In this document: positions 52,436 to 59,335 of the stretch, piece after piece | How positions within the stretch are numbered: position 1 is the first letter of the stretch | Layout: each line of letters opens with the position of its first letter | Source: Oikopleura dioica | Lineage: Eukaryota > Animalia > Chordata | Assembly: GCA_907165135.1 (NCBI GenBank) | Contig: OU015569.1 | Coordinates: forward strand, 9,052,001-9,116,000 | Reading direction: 5' to 3' | DNA length: 64,000 bases | Program-made: the position numbers and the translations under genes | The notes under the pieces: model-generated | Told to the model about the DNA's origin: nothing | The model's input: only the letters and a program-made list of their open reading frames with translations | Databases searched by the model: none

Positions 52436-55400
52436 ATGTTTCGTCTGACATCTCGAGCGAGCAGCAGATCAGCTTGTAGTTCGGTCGAAGCGCGACTTGA
52501 AAAGCTCAAGGGAGGATCGGTCGACTTCCAAGTCAACAAGAACATCGGTTACATCAGGTTCTTAGACAACCCCTTTTTCAGTCTTTTCAATTGCTTTCGA
52601 TTCAGGATTAACAACCCGAAGAAATTCAACGCTCTCACTGGCAGGAATGGGTTCGAACGAAGAATTCTGCTCTGGAAGAAATTAAAAAATGGAACCCGAA
52701 AAGTATGATGCTCGATTTGGCGCGAGTACTCGACGAGGTGGACAAATTCGACGGAACTGGCATCGTCCTCACTGGAGAAGGAAAAGCATTTTGTGCTGGA
52801 TCCGACTTAAGAAACGGTTTCTAGGGCAGTCGAATCAGCCAACCCACCGGGCAGTTGATATTTTTTTTTTTTTTGCTTTATTGAAGATGAATTTCGCGGT
52901 AGAATTTTTTAATCCGATTTTATTCACAACGGTTTTTCCATTATTTTCAAATCGAGTAAATTTATTTATCCGTTTCTCAGTTTTTATTTAAAAAAATGGG
53001 ATTATCACAAAAAACACTCCCTTAAAATGAAACTACTCGGCACTAGTCTAGGCAGTCGATTTTCACGTGAGCTTGAATAATTACGTACTAGCCCTGATTT
53101 AGCACAGTTACTATTTTCAGAGTCAATTTTTGTAGAACTGATCTAGCAGCGCAAAAACGGCTAAAATGAAACCTTTTGTAAAGTTGCCTTTCGGAATTCG
53201 GGCAAGGCTTCGAAAGTTCATCCCTTGCGAATCTTTTTATTAAGTACCCCAGAAGATGGCGTTAAAATGGCTCAATTTATGCATGCGGCAACGAATCGGT
53301 TGTATTCGAATGACAATCAACTCACAGTTTCTTTTATTAATGGTCCAGCATTCGGGGGCGGCTCTGAGTTAGCGACAGGGAACGTTTGGATAGAGTCGAG
53401 TACCTCCCTGGAACTCGACCAGACATAAGACAAAAACATTAACGCGAAAATAGAGAAGGCAACTTTTCCGAAACGCCCCAACAGCCACCGATTTGAGAAT
53501 AGCCGCTCCAGAAGCAAAGGTTTCATTTAACGTTCGATTAAAACATCTTTGAAAACTGATGCTTTAGTTGGCCACTGTTCACAAGAACCTCGCCCTTCAG
53601 GAGCGAATCTCAATTTTCGAAATTTTCGTGTGTTTTTATATCCCTTTTTTCGTGGAATCAGTTAATAATTGTAGTTATCTTTGTTTACAATTAATGACGG
53701 CGCAAGAATAAGCTTAGACTGTCTTGTCTGCCCTCTTCTGAATTCATTTAGGCAAGAGTGAGACTATCAGCAGACACTCGGATATTAAACCGCGCCAGAC
53801 ATTTTTCTTTCTCCGGCGAATTAGAAATGTTGCATCGGAGTGTTCGGTAGAGATTCGTGTTCACAGCCAGGCTGGGCTGGTGCTACTCGTCTTGTTAGGT
53901 TCCGTGTTCAATCATTAATGATTCAGTCAGCCACTTAGAAACACTGACTTGGAGCTTGATGAATTATACATTTTCTAAATTGAATTTTTCTTTAGTTAAG
54001 AGTATTTCACCGATCAACAAGTCAGCCTGATCGACAGAAAGAGAGCTCAGCTATGAATCATGATTAACAGGCTGGTCGGCGCTCAGAACGCGCTATACAT
54101 GCTCAGCACCGCCAAAGTCTTCAACGCACAGGAATTAGTTGATATTGGCTTTTGTGTCCCAGAGATTATCGAAGATATTGAAGTCAAGGATTAAATTATG
54201 TTTTTCCAATGACCCGAAAGGCTTTCTAGAATCGATTTAGTTTTCTTGGAGGGCTACTCTGTTCGTTCTTTTTTTACTGTTCTCTCACGGGCTCTACTTG
54301 TCGCAAAGGTATTTAATTATAAATCAACTTTCGAGTTCATAGCCTAGCGCCGGGCTGGATCATATTTTAGTCACGGCCAATTTCAATAAGGAATCCAAAT
54401 TCCAAATCCTAACCCCCCATGTTTTTGTGCTCGTTGGAAAGAGCGTAAAAAGTTACGTCAGAAAAAAATAGTTTTAGAGGCTGAGTCATCATTGATGACG
54501 TCATGGCGGCTGGTTGAAGTTCCAAAAGTCCCAAAAGTTTGATACGCTCTCATTTTTTTTTCCACAAATGGAAAATTTGAGTTCAATACTGGAAAATGAT
54601 CGCCTTGACCTACTCTAGGTGAAGAGCTATATATGAAATATCCAACTCTAGAAAAAAAATTTTTTTTTTCGATTTTTTCAAAATTTCAACCTAAAAATGT
54701 TGAATTGCAATAGAATACTTCCAAATAATGAAATAAAGCATTTAAATTTGTTTCCTGGTCACAAAAATGATCATTCAAGGTCATCCGGGGTCATTTGAGG
54801 TCACAAATCAAAATAAAATTTTGCGCATTTTTGACTTTTTAACAAAAAATGCGCGCAAAAATCTAGGTAAGAGTATTTATTCAAGTGGGTGAAACTCGGC
54901 CTGATTGCCGGAGATTTCGTAGGAAACGCATTTTGAACAGAAGTCTGCAGCAGAGAAGAGACAAGAATCGCATAAATCTGGACAGACAGTATTGCTTATA
55001 TTATACAAGTAGTAGCTGCCGGATCGCTTTTCTTCGACCTTTGCCTTGATCATACGGATACTTCTTTGTCCAGTAATTATTTTCGATCCGTCGCTGCCCT
55101 TTTTCGAAAGCTTTCCCATATTCATAAAGAGATTGTCATGTACCATCATAATGCGCAAGTCTGTTGGAAGCGGGATATGAGCAAAGCAATGAAAGATGCC
55201 ATTCGGATCGACCATGTTAGCAGTCAGTCGTTCACCGAGAGAAGGAAGATAATCGCCGAGGCCAATAGCAGGAATACATTTCCCATTGAGCTCGTCGCGC
55301 TTCATCATTGTTTTCGCATGCCCTCCAACACCATCGATCTTCGATCAAGTTCAATAAATAGAGGAATGTGTTGATCCCTTACCGTGCTTTTCCCGTGGCG

Positions 55401-58400
55401 ACTTTGTTTGAAAACTTTGCATACGGGAAGGCCCCATCCATCCTCGTCAGACACATCAGAAAGTACTTTCCACGATCGATAATCCTACATATGATGTAAA
55501 CAAACTGCGCCGAATTCTTCATTACGCGCAAAATTATAATTTTGCGCAGATTTTTATTCTGCGCAAATTTTTGAATAACAAAACTTACGACAGCCTGGTC
55601 GCTCATGAGAATCGCACGTTCGTAGCCCTCGAAAACTTCATTGTCCTCGATGTATTTTAAGCATTTCTGGAAGTGAAGCTTTACAATATGTCCGCCCTTT
55701 TTCGAATAAGCATTGCTGTCGTCTTTCCAATACATCAAGCAGGAATTGAATCTTCTTCTCGTTAGTTTACCATCGAGCATAAAATATCCCCAAATGGTGA
55801 AACAATGGATGACAAGCTCGTCGTTGTTACCGCGAAGCGCGTTCTAAAAAATCATAATTTTGCGCAAAGATGGAGGGCGAATTCACATTTTGGGTGACCG
55901 TTCCACCAGTTTTCCCGGCACTGTATTCTCCACTGAAATCGCATTCACAGATCAAAGCGGTTGGAGGATGGATTATTCCGCGTCTCAATTTTGTGCAAAG
56001 ATGGCCTGTATGTCGCGTCTCATTATGATGAAAAAGATCGTTCTTGCAACGTTGCGCAGCCTCAATCAGTAGTTCCTGAAATCGAATAAAATTTTGCGCA
56101 TTTTTTCATTACAAACTTTTGCGGAAAGTGTTTTGGTTTGCGCAATGTTTTTGAGAATTCTCCTCTCATTGTCTCTTTTCCTTGCAAGATCAGCCATCAC
56201 TTTGACATAAAACTTCGGCAAGACATCGGTTGACGTGTCTTCCATGATGTCTTTGATCTTCTTATATTTTTCTGAAAGCGCAACGTTGATTTCGGCTTTT
56301 GAGTTGGGACCATGAGAGCAGCTAAATTTTGCGCAAGCATCATCGAACACTCCTAATGAAGGATACAGCGGATCGTCACAGCCTTTAACCTCCATGAGGA
56401 ATACGATGACTTCCTCAATTGAAAGATTGCGTTCCGTGATCTTCAGAAGGAATAAGAGATCGGCAACTTAAAATCAATTATGGAAATTTTGCTTAAAAAT
56501 TCAATATCTTTACCTCTAGACAATGTGTTTCGCAAAGAAAAACAGGGTGCGCATAAGCACGAATATTCATCTTTGACTTTTGGTTCAACAAAAAGAGGCG
56601 GAATGAGCTGTTTGAACTGAAATGCAGAGATTTGAGGCTTTCCGTCTCTGCATCTCTCCTTGTTGAATTCTTCGCAAAGCAAAGAGAATTTGTTGTGCGC
56701 TAACCTCCGATCGCAGCGAAATTTCTTTTTGACAGGCTTTGAATAATTTTGCGCATTTCCTGGCTCTTCCGCTTCTGCTCCCGGCTCGTCTTCCGCAAGG
56801 TTTTGCCGCTCATCTTCTGGCTCTTCATGCGCAAAATTTTGCGCGTCTTCATCCAACGCCTCATCCTCTGGCTCTCTTTGCGCAAAATTTTGCGCGTAAT
56901 CATCGATCGGCTCATCTTCTGGCTCTCTTTGAGCAAAATTTTGCGCGTCTTCATCGAGCGGCGGTTGATTGTTCTCGTCGTTGTTGTCATCGGCTTCTTC
57001 TGGACTTGCAACTTCAAACTGTACTACTGAGTAAAGCTTGTGGTTTTCTTCTGACATGAAGACGCGAAAGAAGTTTTCCGATGTTTTCTTCCGGAGACGC
57101 TGCTCATAGAACTCAAATATATCCGTCTCCGGCGCTTCATCGGAGTGGAAATATAAGTACTGAAGGACAGAAGAGATATCTTCATCGGTGACTCCGCGCA
57201 TTATTTTTCCGTGTTGGTCTGCTTCTTCATCGGCAATTTCATATATCTGTTTTTCTTTCAGAAGAAGCGCCTCTTCGATGTGATGAACTGTCATGGTCTG
57301 AGGATGTTTTGGCTCTTTAAAAGGCTCTGATAGATTATTGAAGAATTTAACGAATCGGTTTTGAGTTTTTCGATCAACGCCAAACATGAATGACTCGGGA
57401 AGCACGCACGCTAAAGCTTGAATTTTCATCTTGTGGGGGATGTGGAACCAATGTTGCGCAAAATTTGAGTTGAAGCTGTTCTCCGGGACTTCACTTTTTC
57501 GTTCGTTGTAAATAGCTAACATTGCTTTGCTCAGTTCTGCTGAAGCTTCGCCGAATTCCTTGTCCTTAATTTTGCGCATTCGTTTCACCATGTTCTCAAT
57601 CGACTCCCGAGTTTCATTTAAGCTTTCTTCGCGAGCATATTCGTCATCAGAAGGATCACTCGGCTTAGAGACACTCGACCCATCTGTTGATTGTGAGCTG
57701 TTTGTTGAGGAACTCTGATGACCAGCGTCATGATCAATTTCGACTCCTAAGTTAATTTTGAATTTCTGAGACTCCGAAAAATCGCTGTAACAAAAATTTT
57801 GCGCGTTTTAAAAAAATGCGCAAAGTTTTCAGTTTACCTTCCAGTCCGTCGCGAAGGCTCTGTTGGGACTCAGCTTGCTCTTGCGAATTTCTTTTGCTTT
57901 CTTCTATAATTTCTGTTGCCGGATCACAGAAAAGATAGTGAAGAAGAAGCTCATCGGAATCCTTGAAATTCTTTTCAGCGCAAAACGAGCAGTCAGGACC
58001 AAGTTGAAACGACGCGTGATTCTCTAACACTTGCTTCTTCGAATGGACTTCCTCCAATCTGCCGAAGATATCAGCAACTGCGATGCATTGATTGTAGTGT
58101 GTTCTGACTCTTAATTTTCGCGCACGAGTGACTTTCTCTTTAGAACTTCCTATGTTATCGTTGCATAAAAAGCATTTATGATAGAGCCTTGTGGATTTGT
58201 TTATGTCCCGATGAAGAGTAAATTTTCTCAGCGACTCATCATTTTCAAAAGGGTATTCAAGCATTCTATAACATTTTAATAACTATCTCTGATAATTAAA
58301 TAACAGAATAAAAATATAAAAAGGAAAAATAAATTTGCGCAAAATTTTCTCTGTCGAATTGTCCTCAATAGTGATCTGACTCTTCGAAATGCGAGCAATG

Positions 58401-59335
58401 TCCGCTCTTATCAGCGCGCATTATTGGTCGGCGGCTTGCGCAAAATGAATCATCAGGTTTCGCCTGGAGCAAAGCATAAATCTACCCCGAGAAATGCGCA
58501 GAATTTCTCAAAAATAGAAAAATGCGCAAAATTTTATTTTGATTTGTGACCTCAAATGACCCCGGATGACCTTAAATGATCTAGAGTTTGATCTTTCATA
58601 TATAGCTCTTCACCTAGAGTAGGTCAAGGCGATCATTTTCCAGTATTGAACTCAAATTTTCCATTTGTGGAAAAAAAATGAGAGCGTATCAAACTTTTGG
58701 GACTTTTGGAACTTCAACCAGCCGCCATGACGTCATCAATGATGACTCAGCCTCTAAAACTATTTTTTTCTGACGTAACTTTTTCCGCTCTTTCCAACGA
58801 GCACAAAAACATGGGGGGTTAGGATTTGGAATTTGGATTCCTTATTGAAATTGGCCCACAGAATCGAAATAAAGTACATCACGTGATAGACAGTATTGAC
58901 GTAACATCTATCTAGAGAAGCAACACTTTTAATCCTAAAATCCAGAATGGTCAGAAAGACACTTGTCTTCAGTGGATAGGGAAGGGGTCTCCGAGTCTGA
59001 TACTTTTATTTTGACTTTAGCTGGATAATTAATGAAGCCGTTAGTTATTGCAGACTCTCATTAGAAATGTTATTCGTGTGATGAAGTCTAATGCCAGAAA
59101 TGCTGTTACGGTGGGCTGGCTACTCACTGATGAAATAATAATTTATTTAGCTTTCCCTTGATGATGCATTTGGCGAAGAAAAGGGAAAGGGGAGTGAATT
59201 TTATTGCATTTTGCATTTGCGCTAGACGAGAAAATTTCACGACCACGATTCAAGAGAAACTTTGGCAGACTTATTGGACAGCCAGCAAACGTAGAAGCGA
59301 TCGCTGCCTTGAAAAGAAAACTCGAGAGGGATTGA
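52436..59335 (+). CDS. ECHDC1: Ethylmalonyl-CoA decarboxylase / enoyl-CoA hydratase domain protein 1
   Basis: NNPKKFNALTGSMMLDL, FCAGSDL, GPAFGGGSELATATDLRIA and VHKNLALQPGWAGATRLV. After the transposon the gene continues CLQWIGK / NVIRVMKS / LSLDDAFGEEK / RNFGRLIGQPANVEAIA, matching the ECHDC1 end GGPANLEAIA. Confidence 0.8.
54375..54652 (+). repeat. Left terminal inverted repeat
   Basis: Reverse complement of 58580-58856. A further segment at about 54768-54830 pairs with about 58518-58581. Confidence 0.95.
54877..58264 (-). CDS. 1005-aa DDD transposase (Sola-like) with two N-terminal C2HC zinc fingers
   Basis: Exons 57838-58264, 56514-57746, 56117-56466, 55887-56075, 55589-55843, 55383-55484 and 54877-55338 (3018 nt); six GT-AG introns, all phases compatible, no internal stop. 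Motifs: FKQLIPP...SCLCAPC, ECDFSGEY, ILMSDQAVDYRS and SRHGKSTIDGVGGHAK. Confidence 0.85.
56790..56965 (-). repeat. Coding tandem repeat (~51 nt unit, about 3.5 copies) in the transposase
   Basis: Encodes (P/A)LDEDAQNFAQREPEDE-like units; each unit contains GCGCAAAATTTTGCGC or a close variant. Confidence 0.85.
58580..58856 (-). repeat. Right terminal inverted repeat
   Basis: Reverse complement of 54375-54652. Confidence 0.95.

Follow-up and report, generated by a model that had tools for sequence, protein, structure and literature searches.

We describe a DNA transposon in a 64,000-nucleotide (nt) stretch of the Oikopleura dioica genome (contig OU015569.1, positions 9,052,001 to 9,116,000, forward strand), hereafter the window. 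The element is found at window positions 54375-58856 (~4.5 kb), is bounded by an inverted repeat, carries a seven-exon transposase gene on the minus strand and lies within an intron of a crotonase-like host gene on the plus strand. We estimate a probability of roughly 70% that it is an autonomous, structurally intact cut-and-paste transposon of a very rare, strongly diverged Sola lineage, closest to Sola2.

Termini and target-site duplication

The outer terminal inverted repeats (TIRs; Table 1) align over 278 and 277 nt and differ by three mismatches and a single-base indel (~98.5% identity), in agreement with a preliminary description of the window that had reported near-identical TIRs of ~278 bp. 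Including an inner continuation, the inverted repeat comes to ~340 nt. The stretch that interrupts the left arm reflects either a small insertion there or the loss of sequence from the right arm. The terminal 22-mer GGCCAATTTCAATAAGGAATCC is confined to both element ends within the window, with 0 occurrences expected by chance.

The left flank reads AGTCAC/GGCCAATT... and the right flank ...AATTGGCC/CACAGAATC, giving the junctions AGTCAC/GGCC and GGCC/CACAGA. CAC thus forms a perfect 3-bp direct repeat, the sole one fitting these ends, and shifting the boundaries by one base yielded neither a 2-bp nor a 4-bp alternative. A three-base match has a chance probability of 1/64, and the 3-bp length of the target-site duplication (TSD) rests on one copy with readable ends. 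Related contigs (L001, L002, L004 and L005, see below) stop within their TIRs and therefore provide no TSD. When a 19-mer of the TIR terminus was searched against JGI metagenome contigs, 11 chance matches were returned and 0 of them extended. The CAC duplication of the preliminary description, 3 bp rather than 4 bp in length, holds for this copy, in which the unusual target signature is genuine.

Several short repeats were observed within the element. Both TIRs (54480-54510 and 58722-58752) carry GAGTCATCATTGATGACGTCATGG, which contains the palindrome TGACGTCA, resembling a cAMP response element, beside an AP-1-like TGAGTCA. The 10-mer AATTTTGCGC occurs 17 times on either strand of the 4.5-kb element and 0 times in the window's remaining 59.5 kb, and TGCGCAAAA occurs 13 times inside the element versus once outside it. 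Copies of both sit in subterminal regions, introns and coding exons. The hexamer TGCGCA is present six times in the 1.2-kb L018, the most closely related fragment, and almost never in the distant L004 lineage. One possibility is that AATTTTGCGC-type repeats serve as transposase binding sites.

Structure of the transposase gene

The minus-strand gene consists of seven exons separated by six GT-AG introns (91, 47, 41, 43, 104 and 44 nt in gene order) and encodes a stop-free protein of 1005 amino acids (aa). Two C-x2-C...H-x3-C fingers are located at aa 31-60 and 92-113, and the catalytic motifs CDFS (D716), SDQAVDY (D815) and HGKSTIDGVGG (D854) are spaced D-99-D-39-D. An AATAAA hexamer overlaps the stop codon. 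Each of the tandem 51-nt units of exon 2 carries the palindrome GCGCAAAATTTTGCGC; the relative P0001, a fragment 62% identical to the exon 2 region, is without this acidic repeat block. An alternative model of 995 aa with a different intron 4 was dropped, since the 1005-aa version fits the relatives.

Table 1. Positions of the element, its gene and the surrounding host intron in the window
Feature	Position	Strand	Description
Host intron	54330..59053	+	Donor AAG/GTATTT at 54330, acceptor TTGCAG/ ending at 59053, phase 0 on both sides; inferred from frame
Left TSD copy	54372..54374	.	CAC, read from the flank
Left TIR	54375..54652	+	278 nt, terminus GGCCAATTTCAATAAGG
Left-arm-only stretch	54651..54768	.	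~118 nt, A/T-rich, from alignment of arm versus arm
Inner inverted-repeat continuation, left arm	54769..54854	+	86 nt, pairs with 58496-58581, 90%
Exon 7	54877..55338	-	aa 853-1005 and stop TAA at 54879-54877; third catalytic D854 (55335-55333) in HGKST/IDGVGG; C-terminal Cys cluster C-x3-C-x2-C-x8-C-x2-C
Exon 6	55383..55484	-	aa 819-852, ends ...RHGKST
Exon 5	55589..55843	-	aa 734-818; second catalytic D815 (55600-55598) in LMSDQAV
Exon 4	55887..56075	-	aa 671-733; first catalytic D716 (55940-55938) in CECDFSGEY
Exon 3	56117..56466	-	aa 554-670; Cys-rich linker region, conserved in relatives
Exon 2	56514..57746	-	aa 143-553; Ser/acidic N-terminal region, acidic repeats, CLCAPC at aa 539
Tandem 51-nt units, 3-4	56772..56960	-	Inside exon 2, encode acidic DEDAQNFAQREPEDE-type repeats
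Exon 1	57838..58264	-	aa 1-142, ATG at 58264, two C2HC zinc-finger-like motifs
Inner inverted-repeat continuation, right arm	58496..58581	-	
Right TIR	58580..58856	-	277 nt
Right TSD copy	58857..58859	.	CAC, read from the flank

Related elements and integrity of the gene

A related gene was found on five marine-metagenome contigs (L001, L002, L003, L004 and L005), which were reached via the protein fragments P0005, P0009 and P0010; the protein fragments of the family all stem from Logan assemblies or marine metagenomes. Over 529 aa, the spliced protein of L004, 898 aa in length, is 28% identical to the window protein (E = 5e-61). This alignment is colinear across five exon junctions and free of gaps there, which validates the gene model. 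The relative P0005 has no intron at the junction of exons 5 and 6 (intron 5 of the window) and reads straight through, and in another relative an intron lies 15 codons downstream of intron 4 of the window. Such differing placement is expected if the exonic reading is real. The splicing is predicted from these comparisons and from translation, and both bear out the seven-exon, 1005-aa open protein of the preliminary description; its two C2HC fingers, its CxC motif and its three acidic motifs were all located in the spliced product.

The window and L004 lineages have in common a C-x2-C-x13-H-x3-C finger, a C-x-C-x2-C motif and the C-terminal C-x3-C-x2-C cluster. Their acidic blocks correspond as CDFS/VDFS (D716), SDQA/ADNA (D815) and RHGKS.[IV]D (D854). 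Between L002 and L004, the ratio of nonsynonymous to synonymous substitution rates (dN/dS) is 0.14 over 626 codons, which indicates that the family's transposase is under purifying selection in this sister lineage.

Further variation was noted among the relatives. A sub-lineage represented by L005:2700-3100 and L003:460-620 has an extra intron directly after the first catalytic block (EVDF/), and intron positions differ for every pair of lineages compared. L001, L002 and L004 are contigs of 5.7-5.9 kb, each consisting of one related element whose TIRs measure 353 nt or more. An additional open reading frame (ORF) of 200 aa with a C-x2-C motif lies upstream in these contigs and probably represents exon 1, and short inverted repeats of the TTTGAGAAATTTT type form arrays 3' of the gene.

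The intact frame, the near-identical TIRs and the perfect TSD are consistent with a recent and possibly active insertion. It is nevertheless conceivable that the element is an immobile, single-copy relic of intact appearance, i.e. intron filler that is unexpressed, spliced otherwise than modelled or catalytically dead. The presence of one copy within the window, the failure to find the exact terminus in JGI metagenome contigs and the 118-nt subterminal indel between the arms would all suit a relic. We nonetheless consider this unlikely, as all seven exons together form an open frame of 1005 codons in which each conserved residue is present, and the TIRs and TSD are as well preserved as described above.

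Searches for the identity of the protein

Pfam returned no match on any exon or on the ORFs of the relatives, and neither NCBIfam nor a sequence search of PDB returned a match to the transposase. Word-indexed searches of 5.8 billion proteins, with exon 2, the L002 ORF region 372-630 and profile A2 as queries, and an exhaustive HMMER search of 1.84 billion representatives with the 85-aa exon 5 together recovered no more than about eight fragments, all of one small family. In the HMMER search, P0004-P0006 were the only matches apart from low-complexity noise. The window's own gene is absent from these protein collections. No match was obtained by tblastn against plasmids, either with the catalytic core or with a Sola2-type peptide, and viral and genome collections returned no related loci. 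The transposase family is rare and isolated.

Language-model neighbors were sought in the ESM Atlas. For the P0009 core, the nearest were eukaryotic DUF7869 clusters (score 0.92, 186/256 features), which serve as a lead only; the Pfam DUF7869 profile hidden Markov model (PF25273) gave no match at E up to 10. The C-terminal exon yielded nothing useful (0.57).

As the structure prediction discussed below was unusable, an RNase H fold was inferred from motif order. The succession of a hydrophobic strand, D, two strands, a helix, a strand, D, a helix, a strand and HGKS.D would fit an RNase H-like core that lacks an insertion domain. No C/DxxH is found among the 38 residues between D815 and D854, so the protein does not bear that signature of hAT, P, MuDR, Kolobok or Dada (PMC9587614).

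Comparison with Sola transposases

In order to place the protein, its catalytic blocks were compared with printed sequences. RNase H cores are printed in supplementary file 5 of Majorek et al. (2014; PMC3985635), and for each we give the blocks at the first (D1) and second (D2) catalytic residues and before the third (D3). These are GDFAENYT, TDGCAGQYKN and FFATSHG in Sola2-1_HM (with SLHP in the second strand), KDYCQKVL, SDNASSYHGN and NEPCRGKD in Sola3-1_HM, FDLEKVLT, SDNCGGQNRN and ERGHTQS in Sola1-1_AP, and QDDKARVP, VDGGPDEN and ATNAPGRSAF in Zator-1_HM. Sola2_DFa-2 (Bao and Jurka 2013; PMC3627910, supplementary file 3) reads LMDFKENIAL ... FFWSDGAKHFKS ... QYHGKSDVD with the spacing D-87-D-43-D, and its counterpart in the window protein reads CECDFSGEYS ... 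LMSDQAVDYRS ... RHGKSTID with D-99-D-39-D.

All three catalytic blocks match Sola2 at several residues each, ungapped and in the same order, as DF..Y, SD.A..[FY][KR]S and HGKS.[IV]D. The paired blocks are DFKEN/DFAENY versus DFSGEY, SDGAKHFKS versus SDQAVDYRS, and HGKSDVD versus HGKSTID. Regular expressions spanning both block sets, built post hoc, gave 0 matches in 378,484 background residues. On the strength of the comparison by eye and of these patterns, the protein is called Sola2-like at the motif level. The Sola-like assignment of the preliminary description is upheld to that extent, and Sola2 is supported as the probable closest group.

The resemblance to Sola2, as represented by Hydra Sola2-1_HM and the dictyostelid Sola2_DFa-2 and PPa-1, extends beyond single residues. 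Each encodes one large transposase (888 aa in DFa-2 versus 1005 aa here) with a compact core of three catalytic aspartates (DDD), which can be summarized as DF.EN/GEY at D1, [ST]D.A..[FY][KR]S at D2 and HGKS.[VI]D at D3. The core spacing is similar (87/43 in DFa-2 versus 99/39 here), and a C-x2-C motif upstream of the core is common to both. Sola3 (Sola3-1_HM and C. remanei CRE_08425) also shows likeness. Its D2 block SDNAS.Y matches the ADNASEY of the relatives with an equal D-to-Y distance, its NEPCRGK resembles KEPRHGK, and there are a conserved Q and [LV]H in the second strand. The D2 and HGK blocks in fact fit Sola3 about as well as Sola2, and it is D1 that differs (KDYCQKV or MDWSQKV versus CDFSGEY here). 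Sola1 and Zator have little in common with the window protein beyond the catalytic aspartates.

Several observations weigh against a place within Sola2. The comparison was made by eye, at the motif level, on short blocks of printed sequences, and none of the tools used linked the protein to a named transposase family at statistical significance. The HMMER search described above, with its short 85-aa query, retrieved no sea-urchin or Hydra Sola2-type protein, which suggests great distance; identity between Sola2 and this protein is too low for HMMER to link them. AlphaFold2 applied to P0009:372-750 with a shallow 11-row alignment gave a predicted local distance difference test (pLDDT) score of 38.8, so the model could lend the fold no support. 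The ends also differ. Described Sola2 elements have 4-bp AT-rich TSDs (AWWT, ATAT...), TIRs of 12-22 bp and termini beginning with GA (PMC3627910), whereas the element described here has the GC-containing 3-bp CAC (one copy), TIRs of 278 nt and the terminus GGCC (GGCCAATT...). The termini were compared with those of the dictyostelid elements, which begin with GAATATTT or GAGG (PMC3627910). The TSD of Sola1 is likewise AWWT (PMC3845634). A further difference from Sola2 is the presence of six introns in the gene of this element.

These differences in TSD length, TIR length and termini, taken with the absence of any significant match beyond about eight fragments of the same family and the comparable nearness of the D2 and HGK blocks to Sola3 (SDNASSY and NEPCRGK in Sola3-1_HM), could indicate a DDD lineage of its own superfamily rank. 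The similarity to the Sola2 blocks would then reflect ancestry that is too remote, or convergence that is too local, to be of taxonomic use. The Repbase criterion for a superfamily is PSI-BLAST convergence (PMC4455052). We judge a separate superfamily to be improbable, since Sola2_DFa-2 agrees with the window protein in three multi-residue catalytic blocks, in the upstream C-x2-C and in spacing, and since Sola is by definition a collection of groups that have extremely little identity with one another.

Comparison with Zator/ISAzo13 and PIF/Harbinger

Zator and its bacterial kin ISAzo13 make 3-bp TSDs (PMC10045372). Membership of the element in this Zator/ISAzo13 (TP36) clade would render both the 3-bp TSD and the GG terminus normal, and it was tested because such kinship would have explained the atypical ends. 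When the DUF7869 clusters are excluded, PF07592 (DDE_Tnp_ISAZ013) accounts for 85/100 of the nearest named ESM Atlas clusters, and it is also borne by one of the DUF7869 clusters. The compact catalytic core without an insertion domain is a further likeness, as is the similar D-D-D/E spacing (~93 and 43 in ISAzo13 versus 99 and 39 here). The language-model proximity is weak, however, with Atlas scores for PF07592 of just 0.60-0.66, which is the level of a lead. In hmmscan, no PF07592 or NCBIfam ISAzo13 match was found at E up to 10, and hhalign, run between the family profile and one built from six ISAzo13 transposases, gave a probability of 0.2-0.4% (P 0.14-0.33). For this purpose, a short peptide bait was used to draw ISAzo13 genes from plasmids, the genes were recognized by annotation, and the profiles were built locally. 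The motifs of ISAzo13 are different (DTKKKE, DGGGSN and SKWNKIEH), its third catalytic residue is E where D is found here, and the printed Zator-1_HM core shares only the catalytic aspartates with the window protein. Membership was therefore rejected on the hhalign P values, the lack of an hmmscan match and the differing motifs, and we regard it as very improbable.

PIF/Harbinger elements resemble this one in their 3-bp TSD and G-rich termini, but were rejected because no DDE_Tnp_4 or Plant_tran Pfam match was found on any exon and the TSD is CAC, not TWA; a second Myb-like ORF was not seen in this element.

The host intron

Single plus-strand host exons upstream of the element match the crotonase family (Pfam ECH_1), below the whole-protein cut-off and with a best E value of 5.5e-5. 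The downstream host exons read ...NVIRVMKSNARNAVT and ...GQPANVEAIAALKRK, which appear to resemble the C-terminus of ECHDC1, a tentative name for the host gene. A 44-aa host exon had no match in PDB.

The host intron as predicted spans 4724 nt and would shrink to 239 nt if the element and one copy of the TSD were taken away, close to the ~4.76 kb and ~280 nt given in the preliminary description. The reconstructed empty site, AGTCACAGAATC, has stops in all three frames, and the insertion is thus intronic and antisense to the host gene. The nesting proposed earlier is confirmed in this respect by the frame-keeping boundaries and by these stops, and the crotonase matches agree with the gene family that had been named. 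A short distance upstream (plus strand, 54188-54250), no frame-keeping GT-AG intron can link a host exon ending in ...EDIEVK to the exon that follows it (.FLEGYSVRS..., phase 1). This junction may be a non-canonical intron.

Discussion

We propose that the transposase is composed of two N-terminal C2HC zinc-finger-like motifs, a Cys-rich linker, an RNase H-like core with D716, D815 and D854, and a C-terminal Cys cluster. The C2HC fingers would bind DNA, presumably the TIRs. By analogy with DDD/E transposases generally, the enzyme would bind the long TIRs, excise the element and insert it at a staggered cut. Here the stagger would be 3 bp, giving rise to the CAC duplication. The present copy appears to have inserted into an intron of a crotonase-family (ECHDC1-like) gene, antisense to that gene, and would have lengthened the intron from ~240 nt to ~4.7 kb.

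The host is a chordate with a compact genome and very small introns, in which one insertion turns an intron of ~240 nt into one of 4.7 kb. It may be, and we offer this tentatively, that appendicularians harbor a distinct and still mobile Sola2-related clade in which the stagger has shifted from 4 to 3 bp and the TIRs have reached several hundred bases.

Sola is among the least studied superfamilies of eukaryotic transposons, and we found neither a solved Sola structure nor an active Sola element in the literature. A complete and apparently undamaged Sola2-like element could be suited to a functional assay, which would be the first for a Sola transposase. Superfamilies normally keep a constant TSD length. 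Should more copies bear it out, a 3-bp TSD made by a Sola2-like enzyme would constitute a natural experiment on what fixes the cleavage stagger and, if the clade is a true one, comparison of its catalytic core with those of the 4-bp Sola2 enzymes would reveal the residues that set it.

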